64,000 nucleotides of DNA from Schmidtea polychroa (Eukaryota), in assembly GCA_044892525.1 (NCBI GenBank), contig CM097885.1:176824001-176888000 (forward strand). The letters are read 5' to 3'. Both the position numbers and the translations under genes were made by a program. The notes below the pieces were generated by a model that saw only the letters and a list, made by a program, of their open reading frames with translations, was not told where the DNA came from and searched no databases. This document shows, one piece after another, positions 61,081 to 61,545 of this stretch. Position 1 is the stretch's first letter. Each line of letters begins with the position of its first letter.

Positions 61081-61545
61081 TTAATTAAGTGATAATAAAA
61101 AATCTAAAAATTCTTTTCCTTCAATTATTGATTTAATTTCAGATATGATATTATCAACTATACATTTGTAATCAATATTTTTTATTCCAAGAATTACTAT
61201 CTTACCGCTAGCGAATATATTTACACACATAGGGTTATATTTTATATATCTCAAAGCTGGAAATAATTCTGGTTCATAAAAGCATGGTATTAATTTAGCT
61301 AATTTATTTAAATTACAAGAAAAACCTATATCGGAAGTTACGGTTATCGATTGTATTTCTAAATCATAAACATTATATTCACTAGCTTTGATTATTTCCT
61401 TACACCCCATAATTCTACATTTACCAGTTTTGAAATATATTATTGGATATTTATTACTTCTATTGATAAGTTGTTGTGGTTTCCCTATTGGAAATACCAT
61501 TTTTGATACATCAGTTTTTGCCCTGTAATTTATATTTGAAAGCAT
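61081..61545 (-). CDS. TATA-binding-protein-like protein encoded by the Polinton, 154 aa, intronless
   Basis: Both TBP repeats are recognisable: LSNI...IYFKTGKCRIMGCK and IQSITVTSDIGFSCNLNKL...FYEPELFPALRY...VNIFASGKIVILGIK. Confidence 0.85.
   Translation of the reverse strand: MLSNINYRAKTDVSKMVFPIGKPQQLINRSNKYPIIYFKTGKCRIMGCKEIIKASEYNVYDLEIQSITVTSDIGFSCNLNKLAKLIPCFYEPELFPALRYIKYNPMCVNIFASGKIVILGIKNIDYKCIVDNIISEIKSIIEGKEFLDFLLSLN

Follow-up and report, generated by a model that had tools for sequence, protein, structure and literature searches.

The 64,000-nucleotide stretch of Schmidtea polychroa contig CM097885.1 analysed here (the window) carries on its minus strand, at positions 61081-61545, a gene for a short TATA-binding protein (TBP). 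The question which this locus raises is what an integrated virus would do with a promoter-recognition factor of its own. The region belongs to a Polinton/adintovirus-like integrating double-stranded DNA (dsDNA) virus, and the open reading frame (ORF) is almost certainly a functional Polinton-encoded TBP, here termed mini-TBP. To our knowledge, gene control in Polintons/Mavericks and adintoviruses is essentially unknown, with reliance on host RNA polymerase II (Pol II) being assumed and no regulatory logic having been described. The reading preferred here, to which a probability of roughly 0.55 is given, is that mini-TBP, itself expressed by the host, may redirect TFIIB and Pol II to private promoter boxes of the sequence ATAAACA.

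The mini-TBP protein and its trimmed first repeat

The gene and its two parts (lengths in amino acids, aa) are as follows, with the basis of each assignment in brackets.

61081-61545, minus strand: mini-TBP gene, 154 aa, intact (ORF, Pfam TBP, AlphaFold, Foldseek)
61372-61545, minus strand: shortened N-terminal TBP repeat, aa 1-58 (DSSP of the model, hhalign, invariant columns)
61081-61371, minus strand: canonical C-terminal TBP repeat, aa 59-154, with acidic stirrup, both Phe positions and a long H2' (alignments to solved TBPs)

The ORF runs from ATG to stop with no internal stops and needs no intron. Its residues 62-125 match the Pfam family TBP (PF00352) with an E-value of 2.8e-15 and 56.4 bits against a cut-off of 22.9 (Pfam-A), this being the single Pfam family matched. 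A phmmer search against all PDB chains returned 35 TBPs with E-values of 1.5e-16 to 2.6e-8, the best being the archaeal 2z8u (E-value 1.5e-16), and no other significant matches. Residues 61-140 align with both repeats of each of these TBPs, the second repeat giving the better alignment. The profile of the mini-TBP family likewise matches 35 PDB TBPs, with E-values down to 2.5e-21, and archaeal, microsporidial, plant, yeast and human TBPs all score 60-79 bits with it, a range too narrow for this one 90-aa repeat to single out a source of the gene. No match bearing the name TLF/TRF2 (TBPL1) appeared in the PDB sequence or fold searches with mini-TBP.

An earlier note on this DNA had described an intact, intronless ORF of 154 aa with TBP repeats, a description with which the translation, the Pfam match and the PDB matches agree. 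The motifs it named are all found in the translation, namely the YEPELFP stirrup (residues 88-99, the acidic stirrup and the next Phe), IFxSGK (residues 108-120, the F-x-S-G-K strand) and YFKTGK (residues 35-48, the N-terminal F-K-T-G-K strand). The gene also lies where it had been placed, between small ORFs (60099-60862, minus strand) and the gene for the packaging ATPase (61650-62288, plus strand).

A TBP fold is predicted for the whole protein. The AlphaFold2 model has a mean predicted local distance difference test score (pLDDT) of 96.3 and a predicted TM-score (pTM) of 0.84, and it aligns with solved TBPs along its full length. Foldseek against the PDB gave 44 matches with E-values ≤1e-3, all of them TBPs, over 156-185 columns and with query TM-scores of 0.59-0.72 and identities of 22-29%, the best E-value being 3e-9. 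Among predicted viral structures the TBP-like proteins of giant viruses matched best (E-values 1e-7 to 1e-3, identity 8-22%), while the herpesviral TBP mimics match the fold weakly (E-values 3e-3 to 2e-2).

The N-terminal 58 residues went undetected by sequence-based hidden Markov model searches (Pfam, phmmer against the PDB and the family profile); in the AlphaFold model they form the first half of the TBP saddle. When the profile of this half (columns 1-58) was compared with that of the C-terminal half, hhalign aligned 49 columns with a local probability of 91.7% and an E-value of 7.7e-7, and because of this alignment the N-terminal half is regarded as a true degenerate TBP repeat. DSSP assigns to it strands at residues 2-10, 25-28, 35-38 and 42-48 and a four-residue helix at 54-57, and to the C-terminal repeat a strand, a short helix, further strands and then a long helix at 127-153. 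In the model, repeat 1 (58 aa) has thus retained its sheet, while helix H1 is gone and H2 is down to four residues; it does not show the complete succession S1-H1-S2-S3-S4-S5-H2, of approximately 85-90 aa, of a full repeat. The N-terminal repeat is therefore shortened, as had been said, but its PKRF segment with the Phe has not simply been deleted: the stirrup is reduced, and the larger loss is that of H1 and nearly all of H2, the helices which make up the upper surface.

Column conservation was taken from an alignment of the window mini-TBP with 45 homologues (A1, 46 sequences). Invariant in all 46 are Y7, F38, M46 and G47 in repeat 1 and E93, F95, F111 and G114 in repeat 2, and E91, P92, P23 and S66 are conserved in at least 90%. 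Three of the four DNA-kinking Phe positions of TBPs are retained (F38, F95 and F111), one short of the canonical four; where the first Phe of repeat 1 would be expected, the window protein has a Lys, in a column which is not conserved and in a low-confidence part of the hhalign register. In this respect mini-TBP differs from TLF/TRF2, a cellular TBP paralogue without the TATA-contacting Phe residues. The putative acidic stirrup is present, with E91, E93 and F95 aligning with the stirrup of TBPs solved together with TFIIB or TFB (1ais, 1c9b). In the solved ternary complexes (1ais, 1c9b and 1vol, all among the matches of mini-TBP), TFIIB or TFB is contacted through the C-terminal stirrup.

Cellular and archaeal TBPs (PF00352; 2z8u, 1ais, 1c9b, 1ytb) accordingly share the fold with mini-TBP over its full length, while their sequences are alignable in the C-terminal repeat, where both have the acidic stirrup, the pair of Phe positions and the G-K strand. 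They differ in that their core comprises approximately 180 aa as against the 154 aa of mini-TBP, in that mini-TBP is encoded by a virus-like element, and in strand S1', where at least 90% of the mini-TBP family have Ser in place of the Asn of the aligned TBPs.

The gene family and its virus genomes

A word-indexed search gave 97 homologues of mini-TBP, mostly of 144-160 aa and without informative names beyond automatic 'TBP' labels. An exhaustive search of representatives gave 114 clusters with E-values ≤1e-10, of which roughly the best hundred are short single-stretch proteins, followed by ordinary two-repeat TBPs, and a metagenome scan added 80 further mini-TBP loci. Five homologues on long contigs were examined for their neighbours, and all of them (5/5) adjoin a Pox_A32 ATPase and an rve integrase, in gene strings that end in DNA_pol_B_2 (pPolB). 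An ATPase gene was located by tblastn near the TBP gene in 43 loci, on the same strand in 29 and divergently, like in the window, in 14, with most gaps below 1 kb. It is present in eight of the nine loci which have at least 2.5 kb on both flanks, and the exception, L016 from IMG/VR, lies outside the family: its TBP has the ordinary two repeats, and the large virus that encodes it also has ribonucleotide reductase and a polymerase of family B. L016 was also the sole match in IMG/VR, which yielded no member of the mini-TBP family and no relative of the window ATPase, the family of the latter counting 1457 proteins at E-values ≤1e-5. No RNA polymerase gene was seen in any locus.

The window is collinear with its relatives from approximately 60569 to its end, the ATPase being 67-77%, the integrase 58-68% and the TBP 46-55% identical, and a contig of 1176 nucleotides (nt; L015) is 95.5% identical to window positions 60698-61872. 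The Polinton context given in the earlier note thus holds for the homologues as well, and since they stand beside ATPase, integrase and pPolB genes, the objection that all of them might be single-copy host loci fails.

A wider view of the gene content is offered by L097 (13,018 nt), which has genes for PolB, the ATPase, the integrase, several proteins of 346-420 aa and a TBP of 154 aa, all on one strand, as well as a 123-aa gene with a weak match to Peptidase_C5 (adenain). The virion-module genes of approximately 330-420 aa in the relatives (e.g., L005) have no Pfam match. The loci L097-L099 (JGI 3300022685 and related samples) represent a compact genome version of approximately 13 kb, with PolB first and TBP last; because they place the TBP gene last, it has moved within the genome yet stayed in it. 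In L100, which belongs to the ATPase clade, no TBP gene was seen, the contig ending where L097 carries it.

This gene order bears on the possibility that mini-TBP is an architectural factor, bending DNA for replication or packaging at A+T-rich terminal arrays together with the packaging ATPase. The TBP gene almost always adjoins that of the ATPase, and the terminal side nearest to the TBP gene bears tandem arrays in the window as well as in the relatives, as such a role would lead one to expect. However, these arrays differ in sequence among relatives and do not contain the ATAAACA word, TBP and ATPase lie at opposite ends in L097, and the conservation of the acidic stirrup has no obvious part in packaging. 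An architectural role is considered very unlikely.

The higher the identity of a TBP to the window copy, the higher is also that of its ATPase (Spearman 0.90, n = 39), and the integrase behaves in the same way (Spearman 0.81, n = 26), a correlation which fits long vertical inheritance in the virus lineage. In close pairs (dN <0.3) the ratio of nonsynonymous to synonymous substitution rates (dN/dS, Nei-Gojobori) is 0.05-0.49 and mostly 0.1-0.25; between the window copy and L015 it is 0.19 over 109 codons. Distant pairs, whose ratio is saturated (near 1 at dN 0.75-0.9), were disregarded. The constant synteny, the low dN/dS and the co-divergence of TBP and ATPase are the reasons for which mini-TBP is, as judged from these comparisons, a virus gene that is old and under selection rather than a retrocopy of host origin.

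The possibility that it is a decaying, functionless retrocopy or captured fragment of a host TBP gene could draw on the absence of introns and on a length below that of cellular TBPs. It is next to impossible in view of a dN/dS far below 1, of approximately 100 divergent family clusters with the same short architecture, of the constant synteny in virus genomes and of an identity to cellular TBPs of only 22-29% (Foldseek alignments). The retrocopy was rejected on these four grounds, and the earlier note's proviso that the ORF might nest among recent host TBP retrocopies with neutral dN/dS is set aside by the purifying selection and the low identity to cellular TBPs.

It is worth mentioning that some relatives (L005-L011; e.g., L005 at 9398-9775 and L009 at 8091-8576) have a gene of the Bcl-2 family between the ATPase and TBP genes, a position at which the window copy has none. 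These genes point to animal hosts and agree with the Bcl2 homologs that have been reported in adintoviruses. Four of the same relatives, L005-L008 (ENA ERZ2272806, ERZ2271892, ERZ2271722 and ERZ2271525), are near-identical contigs of 13-16 kb from one relative, each ranking second or third by length in its assembly, and a 10-20-kb contig with the protein is present in 13 index blocks. They look more like a free or episomal virus genome than like scattered chromosomal copies.

The ATAAACA word and the two kinds of promoter

When all 7-mers were counted without bias over the 120-nt upstream regions of 284 ORFs, taken from 29 distinct loci, ATAAACA came out on top, present in 123 of the 284 regions against 17.5 expected (binomial p 8e-71), with overlapping words next. 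In 28 loci it occurs 201 times on the strand of the ATPase gene and 34 times on the opposite strand (p 5e-30); for single loci, all copies are on the coding strand in L005 (14/14), L055 (9/9), L056 (9/9) and L067 (11/11). The preceding base is T in 61%, C in 22% and A in 12%, and the following base is A in 64% and T in 23%. The word stands 6-52 nt before the ATPase ATG in almost all loci, including those in which the ATPase is only 36-41% identical and G+C content is approximately 40%. Mapped in twelve long loci, it precedes most genes of the ATPase-led string and often lies inside the 3′ end of the preceding gene.

Counted by gene class, as the number of loci with ATAAAC within 150 nt upstream, its distribution is as follows.

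ATPase genes: 32/33
Genes of approximately 109 aa: 13/16
Integrase genes: 16/21
Genes of approximately 345 aa: 13/15
Genes of approximately 114 aa: 13/13
Genes of approximately 409 aa: 15/15
Genes of approximately 159 aa: 12/15
TBP genes: 6/72
Genes of approximately 104 aa: 2/13
PolB genes: 1/5

When pooled, 126 of 142 ATPase, integrase and virion-module genes (89%) have the word upstream as against 6 of 70 TBP genes (9%; Fisher 1e-31). Its distance to the ATG clusters at 32-38 nt for the ATPase and the genes of approximately 109, 409 and 159 aa, and near 100 nt for those of approximately 114 and 345 aa. The plus-strand copies in the element part of the window, read from the sequence, are the following.

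61617-61623, plus strand: ATAAACA, 33 nt before the ATPase start
62263-62269, plus strand: ATAAACA, located within the ATPase gene at its 3′ end, 39 nt before the 164-aa ORF
62714-62720, plus strand: ATAAACA, 144 nt before the integrase Met (62858)
62793-62799, plus strand: ATAAACA, 65 nt before the integrase Met (62858)
63840-63846, plus strand: ATAAACA, approximately 70 nt before the next gene
61366, plus strand: further copy of ATAAACA, antisense within the TBP ORF

In the 56.6 kb of host sequence in the window, the plus and the minus strand have 15 copies each. An interpretation of the word as the poly(A) signal of the upstream gene was rejected because A precedes it in only 12% of cases, as against 83% for T or C, and because it also stands before the gene which opens the string, upstream of which that strand has no gene.

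The TBP genes themselves have other words upstream. Enriched before them are a CCAAT-type box and ordinary TATA-like boxes, the latter 30-47 nt before the ATG, both counted as generic cellular textbook patterns. A TATA-like box lies 20-60 nt upstream of 28 of 70 TBP genes as against 19 of 142 module genes (p 3e-5), and a CCAAT-type box upstream of 17 of 70 as against 5 of 142 (p 9e-6). The window copy has such a box.

61573-61581, minus strand: TATA-like alternating run, 36 nt upstream of the TBP start (sequence)

A subset of TBP genes (L036, L064, L068-L071 and others) has TGTTTTA approximately 55 nt and TCATAAT approximately 15 nt before the ATG instead of CCAAT and TATA boxes, a pair which suggests a second type of early promoter.

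That the word is distributed in this way matters for the view, also put forward in the earlier note, that mini-TBP is a decoy or shut-off factor, which would titrate host TFIIB, or occupy host TATA boxes without initiation, and so damp transcription of the host or of rival viruses. Conservation of the TFIIB-contacting stirrup, together with the deletion of the surfaces for other partners, could be read in this sense. Such a view leaves unexplained, however, the private word before 89% of the element genes and its absence before the TBP gene, and a pure TFIIB decoy would not need invariant DNA-facing Phe positions; it is decidedly unlikely.

As a control, IMG/VR was scanned with a PolB alignment of the TBP-bearing clade, which gave 20 Polinton-like contigs of 4-23 kb with a pPolB 24-31% identical and, in 15 of the 20, an integrase match. 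An ORF of the TBP family was found in none of the 20 (family HMM, E-value ≤0.01). ATAAAC stands upstream of 19 of their 235 ORFs and has no strand bias (64 vs 52). In the sequences compared, mini-TBP and the word are thus present together and absent together. In four of the control contigs (L103, L106, L109 and L110, among L101-L120) alternating TATA-like words are the commonest upstream 7-mers, preceding 13 of the 14 ORFs in L106, which hints that these four may use ordinary host TATA recognition.

The proposal of the earlier note that the element may run its own TATA-like-directed transcription with an altered specificity finds support in these two observations, namely in a strand-specific ATAAACA before most genes other than that of TBP, and in distant Polinton-like contigs which have neither the word nor the protein. 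In the mechanism proposed here, the TBP gene would be transcribed by the host machinery from a CCAAT-type box and/or a TATA-like box 30-47 nt before its ATG. Mini-TBP would then bind the private box ATAAACA, usually with T or C before it and A or T after it, which stands in sense orientation, typically 32-38 or approximately 100 nt before the start codons of the ATPase, integrase and virion-module genes. On the DNA, the TATA-like 5′ half of the box may lie under the canonical C-terminal repeat and the deviant 3′ half under the altered N-terminal repeat. The stirrup would recruit host TFIIB and Pol II, and the packaging, integration and virion genes would be switched on as a regulon dependent on the element's own factor, with a temporal order that the promoter pattern suggests. 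The loss of the helices of repeat 1 would also remove docking surfaces for host TBP regulators. Whether this extends to the whole Polinton/adintovirus-like clade, as a self-contained two-tier programme leading from a host-type CCAAT/TATA promoter through a helix-stripped mini-TBP to ATAAACA boxes before nearly all other genes, is an evenly balanced matter.

Several points weigh against the redirection of TFIIB and Pol II by mini-TBP. The link between mini-TBP and the word is correlative. All TBP-positive loci form one clade with the controls outside it, so that the co-occurrence amounts to approximately one evolutionary event, and the control loci are partial contigs, the remaining parts of which may hold a TBP gene. 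In the window alone, five copies on the plus strand and none on the minus strand in 2.45 kb are too few for significance. L094 has a TBP gene and yet lacks the word before its ATPase gene, and in L097 the word also precedes PolB, so that a 'late only' label would be loose. A distance of 32-38 nt from word to ATG leaves almost no 5′ untranslated region if initiation occurs approximately 30 nt downstream, as at TATA promoters. Lastly, ATAAACA fits the core bound by forkhead-type host factors.

The last point leads to a different assignment of roles, in which a host factor (e.g., of the forkhead type) reads ATAAACA and mini-TBP stands in generally for TBP, whichever promoter of the element is concerned, and may escape the regulators that dock on the helices of repeat 1. 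An N-terminal repeat without H1 and H2 would suit such a substitute, and with three of the four Phe positions and the stirrup retained, mini-TBP could conceivably bind ordinary TATA-like sites. However, the word is strictly sense-oriented and its distance to the ATG falls in narrow ranges, which is more in the manner of a core promoter than of an enhancer-type site. The word is, moreover, absent in TBP-less relatives which presumably infect hosts with the same families of factors, and ordinary TATA-like boxes are depleted before the module genes. This assignment is judged rather unlikely, and recognition of the word by mini-TBP itself continues to be preferred.

One short conserved word before most genes is also known from virophages and polinton-like viruses. 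There, the word belongs to the helper giant virus and the small virus encodes no recognition factor, whereas the element described here encodes a candidate for one. It could nevertheless be asked if ATAAACA is the promoter of a helper giant virus, with the element depending on the transcription machinery of that helper and the TBP-like protein serving as an adaptor, since promoter words before each gene typify virophages and some polinton-like viruses and since giant viruses encode TBP-like factors. Such dependence on a helper is highly improbable for an element which has a chromodomain integrase and sits in a cellular chromosome, and whose relatives have Bcl-2 homologs pointing to animal hosts and a nuclear life style. 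Mini-TBP is also nearer to cellular TBPs (24-29% identity) than to the TBP-like proteins of giant viruses (8-22%). The TBP-like factors of giant viruses (Nucleocytoviricota), and B263R of asfarvirus, have in common with it that a virus encodes the TBP fold; unlike mini-TBP, those of the giant viruses have two full repeats, usually with extensions, and work with viral RNA polymerases in the cytoplasm.

The known system most similar in its logic is that of the beta- and gamma-herpesviruses, in which late genes are transcribed from a non-canonical TATT box under the direction of the TBP mimic ORF24 (PMC7498053). ORF24 of KSHV (the herpesvirus associated with Kaposi's sarcoma), BcRF1 of Epstein-Barr virus (EBV) and UL87 of human cytomegalovirus (HCMV) likewise combine a viral TBP-like factor, a non-canonical box before a class of genes and host Pol II (PMC7498053). 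However, these mimics are large, multi-domain proteins which bind Pol II directly and act in a six-protein complex, while mini-TBP has 154 aa and no extra domains. Their box also differs from ATAAACA, no genes for such partners were recognised in the loci analysed here, and the proteins do not form one family.

With regard to earlier literature, the statement that no TBP had been described in a Maverick needs qualification. In Starrett et al. 2021 (PMC8502044; bioRxiv 10.1101/697771), figure legends to the maps of mid-size eukaryotic linear dsDNA (MELD) viruses carry a 'TBP' gene label, and this is probably the same or a related family. The statement stands as far as analysis is concerned, the text of that paper having no discussion of TBP architecture, distribution, selection or cis-elements (PMC8502044); it does note Bcl2 homologs in adintovirus-like genomes (PMC8502044). 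Starrett et al. 2021 and its preprint were all that was found in the full-text literature on polintons, Mavericks or adintoviruses together with TATA or TBP, and a survey of nematode Polintons makes no mention of a TBP gene. Where papers treat promoter motifs of this virus realm, they deal with virophages and with polinton-like viruses which borrow giant-virus promoters. The presence of the gene had thus been glimpsed previously, while the family, its trimmed architecture, its constancy across the clade, the private box and the two-tier promoter pattern appear to be new.

If the preferred reading is true, a TBP of the element and a private box before each structural gene would constitute a simple on-switch for these elements, and their silence or activity in host genomes would become testable from public transcript data. 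The two-tier programme, if it holds for the clade, would also be the smallest known viral promoter-specificity switch and a natural experiment on the extent to which trimming and re-specification of the TBP saddle are possible. The mini-TBP family is in any event a natural minimal TBP, from which the upper surface of repeat 1 has gone while the DNA-facing sheet and the TFIIB stirrup are under selection, and it bears on which parts of TBP serve promoter recognition and which serve regulation. Its viruses are a third independent group of DNA viruses with a TBP-like factor, beside the giant viruses and the herpesviruses. The Polinton/adintovirus group stands near the proposed root of the adenovirus and giant-virus radiation.

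The element in the window and its surroundings

The remaining features of the element copy are as follows, again with the basis of each in brackets.

61546-61649, no strand: divergent intergenic region between the TBP and ATPase genes (sequence)
61650-62288, plus strand: packaging ATPase (Pox_A32 / FtsK-HerA type), 212 aa, intact (Pfam; 67-77% identical to relatives over its full length)
62302-62796, plus strand: ORF of 164 aa, the C-terminal approximately 104 aa of which match the post-ATPase gene of approximately 109 aa in relatives (ORF, tblastn)
62804-63913, plus strand: integrase with rve core and C-terminal chromodomain, frame open (Pfam; 58-68% identical to relatives over 62858-63907)
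63910-64000, plus strand: next (virion-module) gene, first approximately 30 codons, truncated where the window ends (tblastn match with the N-termini of genes of 330-369 aa in relatives)
60554-60862, minus strand: ORF of 102 aa, next to the TBP gene in many relatives too (tblastn; no Pfam match)
60099-60380, minus strand: acidic ORF of 93 aa, for which relatives were not found (ORF)
58841-58952 and 59339-59738, no strand: 21-nt tandem repeat array in two blocks split by approximately 390 nt (repeat analysis)

No stops or frameshifts are present in the TBP, ATPase, 164-aa, integrase and 102-aa ORFs of the window copy, and the element extends past base 64000, beyond which its pPolB gene would be expected. 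Genes for an adenain-type protease and for double or single jelly-roll capsid proteins would likewise lie outside the window. The 164-aa ORF seems to fuse two genes of the relatives (one of 49-63 aa and that of approximately 109 aa), with a single ATAAACA word ahead of it. The integrase has an in-frame, Ile-rich, low-complexity insert relative to its relatives.

The tandem array adjoins a C-run and is made of two alternating unit types with higher-order periods of 43, 64 and 127 nt. The spacer of approximately 390 nt holds a perfect 32-nt direct repeat (58956-58987 and 59169-59200). The array probably represents the element's terminal region, altered by a small insertion or duplication, and would place the left end near 58.8 kb. 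Relatives have unrelated tandem arrays, also on the TBP-proximal side, and terminal inverted repeats were not found between the ends of the relative L097.

Beyond this point, fragmentary remnants of pPolB lie at 53401-54299 on the minus strand, in three pieces 40-56% identical to the PolB of the relatives and with assembly gaps nearby. These presumably represent a second, degraded copy in the same orientation. An intact ORF of 290 aa at 57075-57947 (minus strand) matches ISG20-like DEDDh 3′-5′ exonucleases with its N-terminal 180 aa (PDB 7yw5, E-value 8e-10; 1wlj). It has no Pfam match and no counterpart in the loci of the relatives, and may be a host gene or cargo of the element. The surrounding genome is A+T-rich, with approximately 28% G+C, and contains debris of long terminal repeat (LTR) retroelements, including pol fragments (pieces of reverse transcriptase, RNase H and integrase) on both strands at 42998-44619 (plus) and 48747-50056 (minus). 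The only clear host gene near the element is an intact ORF of 468 aa (41469-42875, plus) for a transporter of the major facilitator superfamily (MFS)/sugar-transporter type.

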